From: Klebsormidium nitens
Taxonomy: Eukaryota > Plantae > Klebsormidiophyceae
DNA length: 64,000 nucleotides
Direction: 5' to 3'
NCBI GenBank assembly: GCA_000708835.1
Contig: DF237423.1
Coordinates: forward strand, 1-64,000
In this document: piece after piece, positions 46,469-57,200 of the stretch
How the letters are laid out: each line of letters opens with the position of its first letter
Position numbering within the stretch: position 1 is the stretch's first letter
The notes under the pieces: generated by a model
Told to the model about the DNA's origin: nothing
The model's input: the letters and a program-made list of their open reading frames with translations, nothing else
Database searches by the model: none
Translations under genes and position numbers: made by a program

Positions 46469-47460
46469 TGCGACTGAGCAAAAGCGCAGAAGCTGATTCA
46501 ACTGTATGTTCAGAAGCAGCAACACCCTTGCAATGTGAGGGGTGAGCTCGTCCCTAAGGAAAGCGCGACGCGAGCTGAACTTCAAATCTTCAACACGGTC
46601 ACCAGTGTAGCGCCAAGTTCCAACCACATTCACAAGCACATGGCAAACTGACCAAGAAAAGGAACCAGCATCAACTTCTGAAACTCGCTTTCTCTTTCCT
46701 TGCGCCTGTTCACACTACGCTTTATCAGCTGTGCTTGTGCCGTGATTGGTAATGTGTAAATTGGCTCTACATACTTGATTGCCACGTCACCAAGTCCGCA
46801 AAATCTTTGCATGCAGTCGCATTTATTTCCGGCGCTTTGTCTTGCGTCACCCTTGGGTGCCAAGTCTGAAAAATGACGTCCGCAAAAGGCACATGCCGCA
46901 GCCAAGTCAGCAGTGCATAATGGCGCCCGGCCCAGTCCAGACTCCAAAGCCCTGTTTAGAGGGCTTGCTACTGAATGCAAGCCCTCTTGAGTCTCAGCTC
47001 AAACTTGAATGCCAGCTCTTTGGAAAGGCCTTCTGCTCAAGACGTTGGCGCTAGAACGACGCATCACTTTTTACTCTAAAAGTCTCCAAGACGCCTTTAA
47101 AGGGGAATTTCCCTGCCCGTAAAAGCTGGCGCGCTGCAATTGGTCTTCTAGGTATCATTCAGCAGCTGTTCAGCATTTGTCGGACCTGTCAGTCCGCTCC
47201 TGGACATTCATCCTCACTCAAACATTCTCCTTAGTTGGGCTTACTTCTTCTTGGAGCGCTGCAGCTCATATCTCACACTGAGGGAACAGGCTGCAATGCG
47301 TGGCTGAACTAGATTGCAGCATGCTGTAATACTTCTATCTTCTAAAGAATAATTTCAAGGAAGCAAGCTCTCTTGCCACTGATCAACCACCGCTGCCAGC
47401 AGCTGAAGAAGCCCTCTCAACTACCTGAACCACCAGATACCAGTCGTCAAATACTTACCA
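46469..47460. promoter_or_regulatory. Probable bidirectional promoter region between the HhH and arginine decarboxylase genes
   Basis: The two divergent start codons are about 1 kb apart. No specific motifs were assigned. Confidence 0.45.
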
Positions 47461-50400
47461 ATGCCGCGCCACCGCGCAACTCCCGGCCCGACGTCCAACA
47501 CCCGCACGGGGGGCCGGAAAGGCACCATGCCTGAGCCCCCCGCTGACCTCCCCAAGGAAGAAGAGCCTCAACCCACTGATGAGGAACAACCTGCAGACAC
47601 CAAAGAGGACAACGCAAACGGCAAGAGGTCGGCTGAGGGGGAGGCGTCGGGGGGAACTATGGTGGGGTTGAAGCGGCAGAAGATGGCGAGTGGGCGGCAT
47701 GGGCTGGTGGTGGTGCCCAGGATTCCGTACCAGTACTTTGTCACCAAGGTGAGGAGAAGGGGCGTTTGAGGGGCCTTAATGCTTCTGTGCTAAATGTTGA
47801 GCTGCTTGCAAACGGGGTACAAGGGTGGTGTCATGATGTCAGGCCGCAGGGGGCGGTGAGTGACTTGGTGGGTTGTCTTTGTAGGCTGCCGCATATTGAA
47901 CACATGTTGAGCTTGAGATTATAGGTTGAACAAGTGGGAAAGCAACGTAGCTCGCACTGATGGCGCATGCATGACGACCAAGCCTGTTTGCATCTTTGGT
48001 GACTCGGGTTTTCGTCCTTAATATTATGTTTCTGAACAAGTTTTTTCCGGCATGCAAGTAGTTCCTTCCTCTGGTCAAAGTGTCAGCTAGAAAGCATGGC
48101 ATGAGTGCTTCCAGGTAAATCCTTTCATATAGGACTTGTGTCTTCCATGACAGGGGTTTGGGGACACTGACGAGGGCGCTGGGAGTGATCCATACGAGAC
48201 GGGCTCATATGACATGGCGCTTGAGATGGCTAAGATCCACCAGTTCAACATATTACAGGTGCGCACCTTCAGAGTGCACCGCAGCAAAATCCGTACGTTT
48301 GTTTACTTGACATGTGCCCTTTTGCTTCCTTGTACTTTTCTTTTAAGAACGCAACCCTTCTGTAGCAAAACTTGAAATTGGGCACAATCCAAGTTGGATA
48401 TGTGAGCTCAATGGGTGTTTGTTAAACATGGCTTCCACTTCTACTGCCTGGCATGCGTTCTTTAGCTTGTCACGCGTTACAAGCTCCCTTTGGATCTCTC
48501 TCACTTTTCCTTCTTTGCAGTACACATCGGTTCTGCCCCCGGAAGCACATGAGACGCCCCTTGAAAATGCAGAGCCTAACTTCATGCATGGTGAGTATCT
48601 TTGCTTTTCTCAATTGATGTAATAGGTGCTTAAAGTTGGACTGAGAAACTAGTTGCTGTACCTGATTGATCACGTCCGGATCAGTTTGATGATCTGGACG
48701 TGATCATGCATGAGGTGACCCTTCGTTTTGTAGGAGACATATGCTGGTCGGTTGTGCATCTAGCAGTGACGCTACCTCGTATGGGCATGGAAATTGAGCT
48801 TCTGGACTAGGCTGAAGAGCTGAGAACTAGTGACCAGGCGGCCCAGCTTACGAATATCTAAGGACCAACGCACACATTCTGTGCACTGCTTGCTGCCGCA
48901 GTTATCTGGATCTATCACGTTCTGCATTCCCGCTTGTCATTGCGGACGGGGCCACTTCGTAAAGTTGCGCGCTGATTCAACGAGGGGACCAAGGCGACCA
49001 TTATTCAGACTCGTCGTCACACACAAGTCAAAAGCATAGGTTCGAATAGGCCGTTCAATAGCCTGAGGCAATACAAAACGTGCTGGGCTCAAGACAGAGT
49101 CATTCATGCTGACGTCGCAACTTGCTGGACAGTTAACTTCTGTGGCCGACCGAGAAGCTAAGAGGTCCGAGATTGTTTGGCCGGAATCTAGAAAGGTAGT
49201 TCCGTTGCAGGTGCCGTTTTGGAGACCATCATGTCCGTGATGCATGGAACCAAGGGCGACCGGATCTGCGCCGGCATTGGCCGAATCCATGTAAGGCTCC
49301 CGATGACGTCGCAGGAACAAGTTTGTTGTTTCTTGGGTTGATAATATTTCTGCCGTGTCTCCTTACTCCGTCGTCATCAAAATTAGCTCAAATCTTCTGT
49401 CAAAGTTTTAAGAGTCTTCTGGGAAGAGTGCTTCCAACTGCTTACATTTATGGTGCTGTGGTTATATGTGCACGTAAAGATTATCATGGACTACAGTATG
49501 TGCAAGGCGTGCCTCGATGCCTTCGGCGGCCAGAAAGCTTCTGCGGGAAATGCCACTGTTTCGGAGAAGCAGAGTGTTCGAGCGGCTGAACAAGTCGCTT
49601 CTCGTGTAGGTGCGGCGCAAGAAGGACAAGTTCGTCATTGGAGGCTACGCTGCAGGTGAGCCAACTCTTCTTTTTCTGTCTCTGAACCAGAAGCGCATTC
49701 AGTTTTTCGTGCTGATGATCAATCTGGTTGCGTATAGTGCTTAAGGAATGCTTGAGGACGAGACGGACAAAAGTGAGCACTGCCACAACGTTCTCGTCCA
49801 GAATTGATATAATACCTCTGCTTGCCTTGCCACGCTTTGACAGGCGCTCTCTTTAGAAACCTTTTGCCTTTCCTTCACGGTTTGCGTACCGGATGTCGAA
49901 CAGTCTGTGTCATCCAATTTGTCAACTCGACCAGATGACTTAGAAAATGTGCTGTCGCCAACCCAAAAGCAAGCGCATTTTGAAAGAGCTGCTAAGTGAG
50001 CTCACCTCCTTGCCTCCTAGCACATAACATGCGCCCCAAATTGTTGCGATCATCTGCCATTGCTGGCTTCAATCCAAGATCGAGCGGAAGACGTCTAGTC
50101 ACAGACTCGTCTGCGTTACAGATCTGCCCACTTCGAATTGATTGCAATACAAGCTGATTAAGTTGCTATGTTCTCAATTTCCAAGGCAATCAATCTTGAC
50201 TCGATGTCAACCTTGTTTGCAGAGTACAAGGGCCACGCGTGCGCAGCCGACGCGACCAAGTCCCTCCAGGACGACTTGCGTGGGATCGTCGAGCGGCGGT
50301 ACGACACCAACGAGTATGAGAGTTTCGGAGAGGACTACACCGTGCAAGTGAGGATGAGACTCCCCTCCCACCGTGTTTGCTTCTAAGGAAACATGTTGGC

Positions 50401-51022
50401 ATCTCGGATGAGATCTTTTGTGATCTTCCGCACTATGCGTATGCTTCTGCGTACAGCCTGCAAAGCCCAAAGCTCGTGCACTTGTGTCGAAAGAGTTGCG
50501 ATGCTTCGTTTGGAAACACGTGTTCCGACTTCTAATACTGGACGCGGAAATGCCTCCTGGCGTCAGTAACTTTCTTTTGTTGTGGTCGACGAGAAGCATT
50601 AAGGAGGCAGGCCAGCCTCATTTCCATCCTTTCAATATCGAGGACCCGTGTTGCCCCGACATTCTGACGTTGTCATTTGTGCCGCCCTATGTTGCCACGA
50701 CTTTGCTTAACGGTCGCGTTGAGCATTGCAAGCTCTCATACGAAGTCCCCCTTAATTGGACCATGCGAACTCCTCTTCAAAGTGCACTTCGAGCTTGCCC
50801 TTTTACCTTCAAACAGAGAGAGCTTCCATTCCTACATCTTTGTTTCAGTCTCCCGCAGCTTTAAATGCACATCCGAGGGGACCGATTGCTTGTGCCTTGA
50901 CTCGCTCAGTGCCATGTTATATCGGGGTGGCATTTCTGCAGGAGCACGAAGTTAAGAAGGGCTACGGAACTGTGCTGGCTGCCATCTGCTTCACATCCTA
51001 CATCATGCCGGAGATCGTCTAG
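47461..51022 (+). CDS. Pyruvoyl-dependent arginine decarboxylase proenzyme (AaxB/PvlArgDC type); 7 exons, about 264 aa
   Basis: Exons 47461-47748, 48154-48258, 48521-48590, 49211-49290, 49610-49655, 50223-50347 and 50942-51022 splice in frame to ...RIPYQYFVTKGFGDTDEGAGSDPYETGSYDMALEMAKIHQFNILQYTSVLPPEAHE...FMHGAVLETIMS...ICAGIGRIH...VIGGYAAEYKG...KSLQDDL...KKGYGTVLAAICFTSY...*. This is collinear with chlamydial AaxB motifs (ALxxAKIxxFNIxxYTSVLP, HGAVLExIM, IGGxAAEY). Confidence 0.88.
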
Positions 51023-52205
51023 AGCCGAGATTGGCAGTTGTACCACGCGATCCGACAGAGACTGCGGCCACTGCCCAGCTCGTACCACCGCAGGAGGTGC
51101 TGACTGCTTAACAGCCGGGGCAGATACGGTGGCAAGTTTCTGGGAGAACGCGGCTAGCAATGTCCGTCCCCGCCTCAGTTTTGTAGGGCCAGATAGCTGC
51201 AGAGACTGTTGTGATAGATCGAGGAACCGAGTGTGACCTTAGTTACCGTGATCGGATTGAAATCTTGTAGAATAGTATGCCCGCGTGCGATTCTGTAAGG
51301 GGTGACTGTATCTGACGTATGTGCTCCGAAAAGTTGCACATGCATGCATGCTATGGACTCCGGAAGCACATCTGAAAGGCAATAAAAGCTTGCCCGTCAA
51401 GTGGTCAGTACGTGCAAATATCAAAGTATGGTGTTTGCAAACATATGTAATCTTGTAGTAGCTCAATGCGTGTAGGTATTTGCCCGGTATTTGGAGTTCA
51501 CGCTGCGCTTGAGCAAGCGGCCTATATGCGCATGTTTCCTCAGTGGATAGCTGGATGCTTGCATCGCTCAGATCAGTGAGTAGTTCATGAGCAGTTCATG
51601 AGCAGCTCTTGAGGCTTCTCGTTTTTGCCCTATTATCGTCAGCGCATCTCGGTCAGCTTGCAGCGCAGCCAGGCTAGAGCCGTTCACCATCGATTGGCTC
51701 GCGCGGTTCAGAGCACTTTGGGGGCGGGGCCTCTGGCCATGTCCGGTTTTCTCTGTCGCGTTGATTTGTTCACGATTGCTGGAGGGAGGCGTAGCAGTGA
51801 GGAGTGATATTTGAGGTGCATGAGGCTAGCTGTGGCACTCACATGCGACTTTGAGTTGGCTTGGCCAAAGACCATTGTTTGTATTGTTATTGCATGTTAT
51901 TGTTATTCTTGTTCAACAATTGATTGCGCTCAAAGTTACATCATTAATTGCACGGCTGGCCATTGTAGGGTAATCACATATGTACTGACTCAGGCCAGCT
52001 ATATTGTTCCATTCGACGACAATGATCATGCATTCCTTGTAGGATCATGTGTTGCGATACAAGACTCTGTTTGACCACGCATTGAAGTGGAGTAAATATA
52101 TAGACTCGAATGCATGGCGATTGTAATGTACTTAAAGTCTGACACTTTTCAGTCGTAAGAACATGCGCGTCGCGGGGTAAGAACCTCACTTAATATTGCT
52201 CAATG

Positions 52206-53570
52206 TCAACGTTCCATGTTCTCAAGCTCAAAGATCACTCCTGGAAATGTTCTCTGTAGCTTGAAGAAGCTGTTCATAGAGTCAATCAGGCCATCCGTTT
52301 CCTCACTCCTTTCTGAATCTAACATCACGTATACCTCAACTGCGACTTTCTCAAGAAGCGGGGAGTTTGGAAGGAGGCTATGCAGATTCTTGGTCAATTC
52401 CAGAAGGTCAAAAATATCGAGATTACAAAACCTGAGATGCCGTAGGTGCCTTAGGCTAGGACCCCGCTCCATCAGGCCGCTCGGTGGCAATTTGGATGTT
52501 TCCACTTTGAGGTATTCCAGCAAAGGATTTGAGATTGCCACTTTTTGAAGCATCACTGTCAGGTTGATCTCCATCTCGTCATCATCCAAGCCCAGTACCC
52601 CTTGATTGAACGTGAAATCCTGAAGACTGGGGCTATTGTCGAGCAGCTGAACCGTCTGCTCCCAAGTAGCATTGATCAAATCCAGAGCCGTCAACGAAAG
52701 CAGCTTGTGTCTGACAACCAAGGTAAACCGATCTTCTTCGAAGTCGTCGTTTTTCCTATGTTCCTCCTCGAAGCGCAGCGAAATACGCTGAAGGCTGGGG
52801 GTGGACGTAAGGTCGATGCGAAGCGCTTCAGCACGAGAAGCTAAGTCGAGGTTCAAGCTTTCCAACCTCTCAAAGTTCAAGCACAGCGTTCCTTCCAGTC
52901 TCCCTTGAAGAGAAAGGCTCTTCAGAAAAGGGCATGCCTGTGTCAAGCTAACCTGGTTCAGCACCCCGACCAACTGATCCCCGCTGCAATTCGAGAGCCT
53001 CAACTCGGAAAGGTTGTTGGGGAAGGAAAGCTGCCATGAGCATCCTTGGTGTCGAAAAACCTTCCTCGTGCATAATTTGAGCCGCTTCAGATTGCTGCAC
53101 CGCGAGAGAGACTCCAGCATGAAGTCGGTGAAAGTGAGCTCGTTTTCGTCAAAGGGTGGTATGTCGAAGCGCTCCTCACTAATGATGAAGGCGTATGGAT
53201 CGTGGTAGGTAAAGTCTTCGAGAGTATCCCTCAGAGACTCAATCCACTTGGCGGGAAAGACCTCAGACAGCTTGCAGCTATTCCCTGCGCTCTTGCAACT
53301 GTCGCAATGGCGATCTACAATTCTCAGTCGCAGGGTTTTCACGTTCTGCGCCTGTGCAAGGAAGCGGCCGTATGCTTTGGTGGACTGGCAGTCCTCCCTG
53401 CTGGCACAAGTCATGCAGCCGATCTCTAACTCCACATCCTTGATACCTCTGGCTGCCCTACGGAATGCTTTGCTCACTCCTGATATTTGCAACAACTCCT
53501 TCATGCTGAAACCCTTCATCAGAATCACGGTGAGCAGATCTGTTGGAAGGACTTGAATAGGAGGAGCCAT
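52206..53570 (-). CDS. F-box/LRR-like protein, single exon
   Basis: The ORF is uninterrupted. It has an F-box-like N-terminus (IQVLPTDLLTVILMKGFSMKELLQISGVSKAFRR) and many LxxLxL repeats (LKRLKL, LSELRL, LESLNL, LQRISL, LRHLRF). The first ATG is at 53570; the ORF track extends to a TTG at 53627. Confidence 0.8.
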   Translation of the reverse strand: MAPPIQVLPTDLLTVILMKGFSMKELLQISGVSKAFRRAARGIKDVELEIGCMTCASREDCQSTKAYGRFLAQAQNVKTLRLRIVDRHCDSCKSAGNSCKLSEVFPAKWIESLRDTLEDFTYHDPYAFIISEERFDIPPFDENELTFTDFMLESLSRCSNLKRLKLCTRKVFRHQGCSWQLSFPNNLSELRLSNCSGDQLVGVLNQVSLTQACPFLKSLSLQGRLEGTLCLNFERLESLNLDLASRAEALRIDLTSTPSLQRISLRFEEEHRKNDDFEEDRFTLVVRHKLLSLTALDLINATWEQTVQLLDNSPSLQDFTFNQGVLGLDDDEMEINLTVMLQKVAISNPLLEYLKVETSKLPPSGLMERGPSLRHLRHLRFCNLDIFDLLELTKNLHSLLPNSPLLEKVAVEVYVMLDSERSEETDGLIDSMNSFFKLQRTFPGVIFELENMER

Positions 53571-53676
53571 TGGGCTTTCTCCTTGCTGCTTCTCTCTCCA
53601 GCTTCTTGTTCTCTGCCACGACGTCAAGCCTCCCTCACCCTCGAAACGCCCAAAGCAGAATGCGGCAATGCAGCCA

Positions 53677-54257: not shown

Positions 54258-57200
54258 TCAATTCTGATCATTCGGAGACAGCCGACGAGCTACAAACATA
54301 CGTTGTTTGTCAGATTATGCTGCTGAAGGGTGATAAGAGCGGACGACAAATCCTCACAGCATCCCCCCTTGCGGTCCTCCGCTTTGCGACCCTAACGGCA
54401 CAAACAACGAGCCCACATTTGCAATAAACATCATACTCGTTTCGGAACCGTTTGCGCTTTTGCCATGGATGTCCCGAGTCACGGCGTCCAGAGCCCCTTG
54501 CAGGTTTTTCTCCTGCGGACTTCCGGACATCACCGCAATCAATGCCATGCGGGCCTCGTCGCGCACAACACCCGCCACACCTAGTTGCCCCGCCGCAGCT
54601 TCCGCCGCCCCAGGCCGCGCTTTGGACCGCGGATCCACCGTAACGCCCATGTCCAGATGTTTCTTCTTCCCATCGATCCCGTCGCCCGTTTTCCGCACGT
54701 TGCCCGTTACACCGGTCCTCCCTGTCGAAGAACTCCCCCTCTTGCCAGCAACACGTCTTCCGCTTTCTACTGGACCGTCACCAACCGGCCGACTACGTTC
54801 TTCCACTTCAAACGACGTAGAAGTCCCCCCGCCTGCGCTGCGCCCCGCCCCTCTCTCCCGGTATTTCAGCGCCAGCTTCGCCTCGACGGAAGCTTTGAGC
54901 GCCTCCCACTTCTGCTGCCGCACGTCCGCGCTCGTTCCCGGGCTCCCCTTCAGCGTGTCTTTGACCGCAGCCTTGACCGCGTTCCACTCTTGCTGACTAA
55001 TGAACCGGCCACTCGCAGCCTGTGTATGTCCCCCGCTTCCGGGCACCCCCACCGAGCGACCCGGCTGATCCCCAGAATGCGAATCTGAAACTTCAGACGC
55101 ACTCTTCGAGTGCGCAACCCCTTCGGCCTCTTGTGAGTGTCCCTTAGCGGATGATAAGCTCACAGAATTATCGTCCCGTCGTTCGCTTCCCCCCTCTTCT
55201 TCCGCCCTCAGACCCTCCCCGCTACTCGCTTTTCTCCCGTTCCCAAGCCCCCCGCCAATCCGCCTCTCTGCATCCGCGTTTCCGGTCCCCGTACCACTCC
55301 CCAAATTTTCGGACGGCACCCCGTGCCCCTCCGCCGAACGCCCCCCCGCGTCCGCACCCTCTGCCACCTGCTCCAACACGTACTGCCGGTTCCAGAAGGG
55401 GCCCCGTCGGACGATCTCCCACCCCGGCCCTCTGTTCACAACCACTCCGTCCCGGGTCCGCCCGCTTCCGGACAGGGCCTCTCGCCCGTTCCGCTTAAAC
55501 GCCGGATGGTCCATTATGATTTCCCACCACGGCTTGTCCGCGGCTCCTCCAGCCGTCCGCCGACTGCTGGAACCGTCCGCAGAGTGAGCGCCCACTCCGC
55601 TGTCGATTCCGTTCCGCTGATCCGAAGTGCCCCCTGTGTAATCGCCGTCGGCGGGATCCCTTCCCAGTAAGTCGTCCGCATTACCTTTCGCGGTGCCAAT
55701 TGTCCGTTCCGGATTCTCACGACTCCTCGGAGAGTCTGCCTGCTCATTCATCCCCGCATCACTTCCGCTTCCAACCTGGGAACCCACTCGCGCTCCCCCG
55801 TCAAACCCCGAGTTCCGTTTCGCTTCGACTTCCCTCACCACATCGCCCAATAAGCTGCTGCCAGGTGGCCCGCTGTCCTTGAAGGCATCCGGTCCCCACC
55901 GCCGGATTCCGCCCCTCTCGCCGGATTCCGCCGTCGCCCCGCCCTCAGACTCCTTCAAGCGGTGCGCCAACTCCTGCTTGAGCCGCTCCTGGGCGATGGC
56001 GGCCGCCTCAGCAGCTGCGGCGCAGTCCTCGAAGCTGTCGACTGAGATGGAGAAGTGCGGCTGGAGGCCCACCGCGCTGCGGCCCCACTTGTTGCCGAGT
56101 ACCACGTCGTCGAAAAGGTCCTGGAGAAGGATGGGTTCAGATATTTTCGATACAGTAGAACGAGCGGAACGATGATGTGGAATAGCAATGCGAATCTTCT
56201 TGTTGCCAAGGACTACGTCGTCGAAAAGGTCCTGCAAAAGGATAGGTTGAGAAAATTTCGATACAGCAGAATGAGCGGATGATACTATAACGGCCCGCTG
56301 CGGCCCCACTTGTTGCCAAGGGCTACGTCGTCAAAAAGGTCCTGGAGAAGGAGCAACACCTTGAGGTGCGGAAAGCCGACCAGCCGAACGACGGGCCGGA
56401 GGCTGAACGTCCAGGAAGTTACGTCGTCAAGGAAAGTTTTAGAGGTGATGCAACTGATCTGAAACGGGTCAGCACACCAGGAAAACTGATATGAAAAGAG
56501 AGTTGTATGTTCAGAAGAAAGCGGCGGCCGTCTTGTTGGTCAACCTTCTGACGAGAACCTGAGCTGATTTCAGAGGAGTGTATCAAGGTCAAGGCAGAAT
56601 TTGAAGAGCTCAAAAGGCTGGTTTAGGGCCTGATGCAACAGAGAACGTCAAAGTGTAATGAGTGGTGCGTTTGGATCGGACAATCTTGCATGAGCAGGAC
56701 GGCTTAAGTACGGAGAGGCAAGCACCCTGCTCTTCGCAATTCAACTGCCCGAAGGCGAGAATTTTCATACAACTTGAGGTTGGACAAAAGGATGCATGCT
56801 CCCCGGCCCCTTTCTCGCGGGATTGGGTGTCGACGCAGCGGCCCTCGAACAGCTCGAGTCCGGTGCCATTCACTGACAGCCCAGGCCTCTGTTCTTCTAA
56901 CTGTCCTTCCTTGCGCTCCAAAAAACTTTCTCAGAGACGAGACCTCCTGATCCAAAACCGAAAGGCCCTGCTCACCTGCGCATACACCGCCGCCAGGTTG
57001 AGCAGAATCTTGTCGACTCCCGCGCTCGTCCCAGACGGGGCCTCCTCCATCAGATCCTTCACATCGCTCGGTTCCAGCAGGCTGGTGTCCTCTTCGAGCC
57101 CGTCCGCATCGGAGGGGGGTGCTCCTAGCCCGCCGGGGGGGGCCCCCGGATCGAGGGAACTGTAGCGCTGCGCGCGGCGCGTGCGGATGAGGCCCTCAAA

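Follow-up and report, generated by a model that had tools for sequence, protein, structure and literature searches.

Conversion of arginine to agmatine is described for enzymes of unrelated folds, and the closest described relatives of the gene considered here belong to the pyruvoyl-dependent arginine decarboxylases (PvlArgDC; Pfam PF01862). This gene lies at positions 47461-51022 on the plus strand of a 64,000-nucleotide stretch of Klebsormidium nitens DNA (contig DF237423.1, positions 1 to 64,000; the whole stretch is referred to below as the window). An earlier reading of its letters, here called the original prediction, had described it as a spliced PvlArgDC of the chlamydial AaxB type. 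Within the family, PdaD of M. jannaschii (PDB entries 1n2m and 2qqd) is a protein of 165 amino acids (aa) with a Ser-Ser cleavage site and no N-terminal extension. Its residue N47 acts in cleavage and D35 and E109 act in substrate binding and catalysis; D35 presumably touches the substrate guanidinium in the structure. The plant arginine decarboxylase (ADC) of the SpeA type carries out the reaction proposed below, arginine to agmatine, but has an unrelated fold and needs pyridoxal 5′-phosphate (PLP). To our knowledge, accounts of plant polyamine synthesis comprise PLP-dependent arginine and ornithine decarboxylases only. AaxB of Chlamydia (195 aa) also converts arginine to agmatine, as a part of the aaxABC system of arginine:agmatine exchange, and serves this exchange rather than polyamine synthesis. 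The residue preceding its cleavage serine is presumably Thr52. AaxB self-cleaves at Ser53 (PMC2720952). The SpeDA type of ADC, finally, catalyses the same proposed reaction and is pyruvoyl-dependent, but is derived from S-adenosylmethionine decarboxylase (AdoMetDC) and has an unrelated fold (PMC10407285, PMC9992855).

We propose, with a probability of roughly 0.72, that the Klebsormidium gene is a transcribed nuclear gene of seven exons that encodes a 264-aa PvlArgDC proenzyme of ancient bacterial origin, which would cleave itself and convert arginine to agmatine. The seven exons span 47461-51022 on the plus strand and every intron is bounded by GT...AG. When the exons are rejoined from the sequence, the spliced coding sequence of 795 nucleotides (nt) has no internal stop codon and yields 264 aa plus the stop, in agreement with the seven GT-AG exons and the absence of frameshifts claimed by the original prediction. 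The original prediction had also called for a check of the junctions with transcript data. Contigs of four public runs (X1, X4, X9 and X12, each from a different study; that the run type is RNA is our guess) were placed on positions 47000-51600. Each of the four runs contains a contig that lacks exactly the six introns, with zero mismatches or gaps, so that all six junctions are base-exact in four studies (47748/48154, 48258/48521, 48590/49211, 49290/49610, 49655/50223 and 50347/50942). Such contigs must originate from spliced RNA because DNA cannot be intron-free at this place. The transcript extends from about 47013 to about 51306, and the two longest contigs measure 1522-1527 nt (about 1.5 kb). 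Further contigs, at 48818-49224 and 50320-50668, begin inside introns 3 and 6 and reach the neighbouring exons; their depth is 2.6-4.2, whereas the spliced contigs of X1 and X4 have a depth of 30-38, and they probably represent unspliced precursor RNA. The Klebsormidium PvlArgDC gene is a real, spliced and transcribed nuclear gene, with the following features (UTR, untranslated region):

47013-47460, plus strand: 5′ UTR of about 448 nt; transcript contigs begin at 47013/47014 in three runs
47461-47748, plus strand: coding part of exon 1, aa 1-96; N-terminal extension (aa 1 to about 62), then the first part of the conserved domain (PRIPYQYFVTK)
48154-48258, plus strand: exon 2, aa 97-131; D116 codon 48211-48213, N128 codon 48247-48249
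48521-48590, plus strand: exon 3; T133 codon 48524-48526, S134 codon 48527-48529 (predicted serinolysis site and pyruvoyl precursor); ends in phase 1
49211-49290, plus strand: exon 4, HGAVLETIM...GRIH; preceding intron in phase 1, following intron in phase 0
49610-49655, plus strand: exon 5, VRRKKDKFVIGGYAA; the E197 codon opens with the final base of this exon, 49655
50223-50347, plus strand: exon 6; 50223-50224 finish the E197 codon; following intron in phase 0
50942-51022, plus strand: coding part of exon 7 with the TAG stop codon, EHEVKKGYGTVLAAICFTSYIMPEIV
51023-51306, plus strand: 3′ UTR, about 284 nt long; in runs X1 and X4 the contigs stop at 51302-51306

The cleavage serine had been placed at 48527-48529, and a TCG codon is indeed found there. 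Likewise, the three motifs on which the assignment had been founded are all present, each across an exon junction: FNILQ/YTSVLP at exon 2/3, HGAVLETIM at exon 3/4 and GGYAAEY at exon 5/6. Upstream of the ATG at 47461 the frame is ended by an in-frame stop codon at 47305-47307. Judged from the alignment, in which M23 coincides with the start methionine of the Myrmecia and Coccomyxa proteins, the true start codon may be the alternative candidate at 47527 (M23), which would give a protein of 242 aa. The 5′ UTR contains two minimal upstream open reading frames (uORFs), one at ATG 47296 (MRG*, in the frame of the main ORF) and one at ATG 47321 (ML*); control by uORFs is known for other polyamine genes.

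Membership of the PvlArgDC family was to be decided, according to the original prediction, by a search with the family's hidden Markov model. Exon 2 alone (35 aa) passes the gathering threshold of PF01862 with 26.6 bits (gathering score 22.7; profile positions 9-36), and the spliced protein, matched over aa 63-263, reaches 302.8 bits with a profile built from nine PF01862 proteins. Exon 2 was also used in an exhaustive HMMER search, which retrieved 28 proteins, many of them of full length. BLASTP alignments of the spliced protein cover aa 63-264 with E values down to 1e-88 and 55-61% identity to full-length homologues; the alignments of the homologues start at aa 55-87 of the Klebsormidium protein, and all homologues matched carry PF01862 in their precomputed annotation. 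In Pfam searches with single exons, exon 2 was the sole match, the remaining pieces being too short, and single-exon pieces of the gene gave no match to the NCBIfam equivalog models. A search of the ESM Atlas with exon 2 returned no usable match; tetratricopeptide repeat (TPR) matches obtained with exon 2 in a phmmer search of the PDB were dismissed as chance.

When the nine-protein profile was compared with the PDB, the M. jannaschii PvlArgDC (1n2m, 2qqd) was the sole match (E 8e-9, 38.5 bits). In this alignment D35, N47, S52-S53 and E109 of the archaeal enzyme correspond to D116, N128, T133-S134 and E197 of the algal protein, which thus keeps the cleavage serine and the equivalents of D35, N47 and E109; the deposited sequence of 2qqd has alanine at the position of N47. 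Among 307 collected members of the subfamily, the Asp, Asn, Ser and Glu residues are each invariant in at least 306 sequences (the cleavage serine in 306/307), and the residue preceding the serine is threonine in 265 and serine in 42. The subfamily motif reads DP(W/Y)ETGSYD...FNI..YTSV.PPE...GGYAAEY. PdaD and the algal protein differ in the residue before the cleavage serine (Ser-Ser versus Thr-Ser) and in the N-terminal extension, which only the latter has. Against the archaeal equivalog model TIGR00286 the algal protein fails by proxy, as judged from its close homologues (46-60 bits, cut-off 107). On sequence grounds, the protein is a PvlArgDC of the PF01862 family, within a bacterial-type subfamily that stands well apart from its archaeal counterparts.

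By analogy to the M. jannaschii enzyme, whose structure is solved, and to AaxB of C. pneumoniae, which has been characterised, the proenzyme would cut itself between T133 and S134. The products would be a beta chain from the N-terminal part and an alpha chain of 131 aa, with S134 converted to the pyruvoyl cofactor at the alpha N-terminus, and the chains would assemble as (alpha-beta)3. N128 is predicted to assist the cleavage, and D116 and E197 to act in substrate binding and catalysis. The mature enzyme would then decarboxylate L-arginine to agmatine without PLP, and agmatine may feed putrescine synthesis. We infer self-cleavage, substrate, subcellular location and this metabolic role from the described enzymes; the arginine specificity in particular is an extrapolation, because the subfamily scores below the NCBIfam equivalog cut-offs.

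The homologue lists comprise the best 120 of 336, 729 and 258 hits from three profile searches. Sporadic algal homologues had been anticipated by the original prediction, which understated the distribution: genes are annotated from trebouxiophytes to liverworts, mosses, Selaginella and a fern. The lists contain trebouxiophytes (Botryococcus, two Coccomyxa species and [Myrmecia] bisecta), the streptophyte algae Chlorokybus and Spirogloea (the latter deduced from an SM gene id), the liverworts Marchantia polymorpha, Riccia and Calypogeia, the moss Sphagnum and, by the names given in the sources, the lycophyte Selaginella (LOC112341617) and the fern Adiantum. These Viridiplantae homologues show 52-61% identity to the Klebsormidium protein and all carry PF01862; the source-given name throughout the family is arginine decarboxylase, assigned automatically. 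No seed-plant protein was present among the best 120 hits of the profile searches. This does not prove absence from seed plants, since a grapevine gene carries an annotation as pyruvoyl-dependent ADC (PMC5895676). In the literature searched we found no work on a PvlArgDC from plants or algae; the 'prokaryotic ADC' of Spirodela was ruled out as a precedent because it is a PLP enzyme. Orthologues are already public under automatic names, so that the finding is no surprise at the database level; the green-lineage clade appears to be unstudied biochemically, and the finding is of value because it invites a simple test at the bench and corrects the notion that the gene is chlamydial in origin. With a conserved and expressed pyruvoyl-type homologue from trebouxiophytes to a fern, the polyamine pathway of non-seed plants would gain an enzyme that has so far gone unstudied.

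The relationships were analysed in a maximum likelihood (ML) tree of 89 sequences (LG+C20+F+G4, unrooted; chlamydial AaxB outside this set). The Viridiplantae form a clade with support 99/87, present in 99% of the bootstrap trees, that excludes prokaryotic and viral sequences and consists of 30 rows, namely all 15 named Viridiplantae and 15 unnamed transcript-like sequences. Within it, an embryophyte clade is supported by 99/92, and the Klebsormidium protein pairs with that of Myrmecia bisecta (99/80). In the approximately unbiased (AU) test, a placement of the Klebsormidium protein with the other streptophytes is not rejected (p 0.32), and the data are thus compatible with vertical descent. 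The bacterial sister group of the Viridiplantae clade is not resolved in this tree. The introns of four orthologous genes were mapped from their genomic loci, a match being defined by alignment column and phase. Three of the six Klebsormidium introns are common to green-lineage orthologues in position and phase:

Intron 3, alignment column 267, phase 1: common to Coccomyxa
Intron 4, alignment column 294, phase 0: common to Myrmecia and Sphagnum
Intron 6, alignment column 351, phase 0: common to Myrmecia and Coccomyxa

The support for the Viridiplantae clade and the shared introns together argue for a single old acquisition from a bacterium, most likely before or near the chlorophyte/streptophyte split, followed by intron gain; the direction of this transfer is deduced, since the tree is unrooted. 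A prokaryotic origin old enough for intron gain had been postulated in the original prediction, and the 99/87 clade among bacterial sequences and the three shared introns fit it. If so, the gene would neatly exemplify how an old gene of bacteria turned into a plant gene with introns.

The Viridiplantae homologues share clade and intron positions with the Klebsormidium gene, but their N-terminal extensions differ. In Klebsormidium the extension (47461-47715, 85 aa) is charged and lineage-specific, and exon 1 has no Pfam match. A comparison of the Klebsormidium protein with seven homologues (P0063, P0231, P0232, P0236, P0235, P0007 and P0031) reveals two kinds: a Lys/Glu-rich, disordered-looking extension in Klebsormidium, Myrmecia, Coccomyxa and Botryococcus, and a transit-peptide-like one in Chlorokybus, Spirogloea, Marchantia and other embryophytes. 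The first looks nuclear or cytosolic, and the two kinds are a hint, drawn from the sequences, at different compartments. It is conceivable, if rather unlikely, that the Viridiplantae clade represents an unrecognised PLP-independent enzyme, maintained from algae through to ferns, with a job unlike that of the canonical plant ADC, be it another substrate or a compartment-specific supply of agmatine.

Several points weigh against the assignment as an arginine decarboxylase proenzyme. The Pfam score itself covers exon 2 only, the whole protein having been scored against the nine-protein profile, and the score of the subfamily profile against the solved structure is just 38.5 bits. The closest eukaryotic and bacterial homologues attain the above 46-60 bits against the cut-off of 107 for TIGR00286 and 38-55 bits against the cut-off of 207 for NF009064; the low scorers include Sorangium proteins that are themselves named PvlArgDC. 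No characterised enzyme was found in the bacterial/plant subfamily. The correctly spliced Klebsormidium protein is not in the hit lists (best 120, from a collection of 5.8 billion proteins), despite its 302.8 bits, which would correspond to about the 17th rank; the locus may have no public gene model, or one that differs. Finally, the translation efficiency is hard to judge, given the length of the 5′ UTR, its two uORFs and the two candidate start codons.

These scores are also the ground for the alternative that survives best, namely that fold and self-processing are the same and that the enzyme acts on another substrate or in another role (e.g. on a basic amino acid other than arginine, or on an analogue of arginine) and supplies no agmatine. 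We know of no other activity for the PvlArgDC fold, and we regard this alternative as improbable, though worth keeping in mind. It would be in line with the position of the subfamily far below both NCBIfam equivalog cut-offs, with its distance from the only solved enzyme (the 38.5 bits mentioned above) and with bacterial gene neighbourhoods that are devoid of polyamine genes, and AdoMetDC-type pyruvoyl decarboxylases of another fold have switched substrate repeatedly (PMC10407285, PMC9992855). However, the equivalents of D35 and E109 of M. jannaschii, an Asp and a Glu, are invariant in the subfamily, and every source-given name of the family is arginine decarboxylase.

A transfer of an AaxB-type gene from Chlamydiae to the plant lineage, with a role in arginine/agmatine exchange or acid resistance, is one reading of the 'chlamydial AaxB type' label in the original prediction. 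This label finds no support, and we consider such a transfer very unlikely. The question was judged indirectly, from hit lists and the published description, with the AaxB sequence itself outside the comparison. T133-S134 of the algal protein is a Thr-Ser site, as required of the AaxB subtype, yet Thr-Ser is the general state of the subfamily (the 265 of 307 given above) and hence not diagnostic. The sequence of AaxB near the site may resemble the subfamily motif, which is a lead rather than a test. None of the best 120 of the 336, 729 and 258 hits is a chlamydial protein, and this includes the search with the short N-terminal profile that favours proteins of about 195 aa (best 120 of 729). 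Instead, the lists contain Desulfobacterota, Ignavibacteriae, Firmicutes, Myxococcota and Methanothrix, the named prokaryotic relatives being Dethiosulfatarculus, Ignavibacteriae, Alicyclobacillus, Desulfitobacterium, Sorangium, Omnitrophota and Methanothrix. A contig scan with the pattern [DN]P[WY][EH]T[GE][SA][YF]D recovered Sorangium, Methanothrix and others and no Chlamydia; this pattern would probably miss AaxB. No porin (aaxA) or antiporter (aaxC) was recognised among the seven long flanking ORFs at 41-59 kb of the window, which have no Pfam match; operon logic is in any event inapplicable to a eukaryotic gene. In addition, the Chlamydiaceae themselves are reported to have gained aaxABC by horizontal transfer (PMC2720952). 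What speaks for the chlamydial label is the Thr-Ser site, together with the self-cleavage of AaxB at Ser53 (PMC2720952).

That the gene is not a working algal gene, but a bacterial contaminant in the assembly or a relic in decay, is hardly credible and was rejected. In favour of this view, similarity to the nearest bacterial-like proteins (about 59-61%) matches that to the nearest algal ones. Against it, transcripts from four studies lack the six spliceosomal GT-AG introns, intron positions are common to other green-lineage genes, the ORF is intact and the key residues are all kept.

We return to the proposed PvlArgDC with two neighbours on its 3′ side, the uninterrupted ORFs 52206-53627 (minus strand, 473 aa) and 54354-56309 (minus strand, 651 aa), which have no Pfam match. 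Among the bacterial relatives, the neighbourhoods of three homologues (L007, L025 and L016) contain no polyamine genes. In a gammaproteobacterial metagenome-assembled genome (MAG) a gene for an amino-acid permease of the APC family (L028:3554-4810) lies 17 nt downstream of the PvlArgDC homologue (L028:2959-3537), a layout as in decarboxylase/antiporter systems of the AaxB/AaxC-like or AdiA/AdiC-like kind. Many MAGs of Methanothrix/Methanotrichaceae (L008, L010, L011 and L017-L027) encode a protein of the bacterial-type subfamily, about 240 aa long and with an N-terminal extension, beside the classical archaeal form. Their carriage of the bacterial-type subfamily suggests transfer between domains.

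Note that homologues also occur in viruses. About 80 viral contigs (L035-L112, from IMG/VR, many of them named GVMAG, for giant-virus MAGs) encode intronless PvlArgDC homologues of about 215-230 aa that keep the four catalytic residues (Asp, Asn, Ser and Glu). The fold goes unmentioned for viruses in an account of viral polyamine enzymes (PMC9992855). In the tree the giant-virus sequences are separate from the plant clade and group together with support 100/100. In two of the contigs, where the GC content is 34%, about 1.8 kb separate the viral gene (L084:3983-4642 and L047:3983-4642) from a gene for an RNA polymerase subunit of the Rpb2 type.

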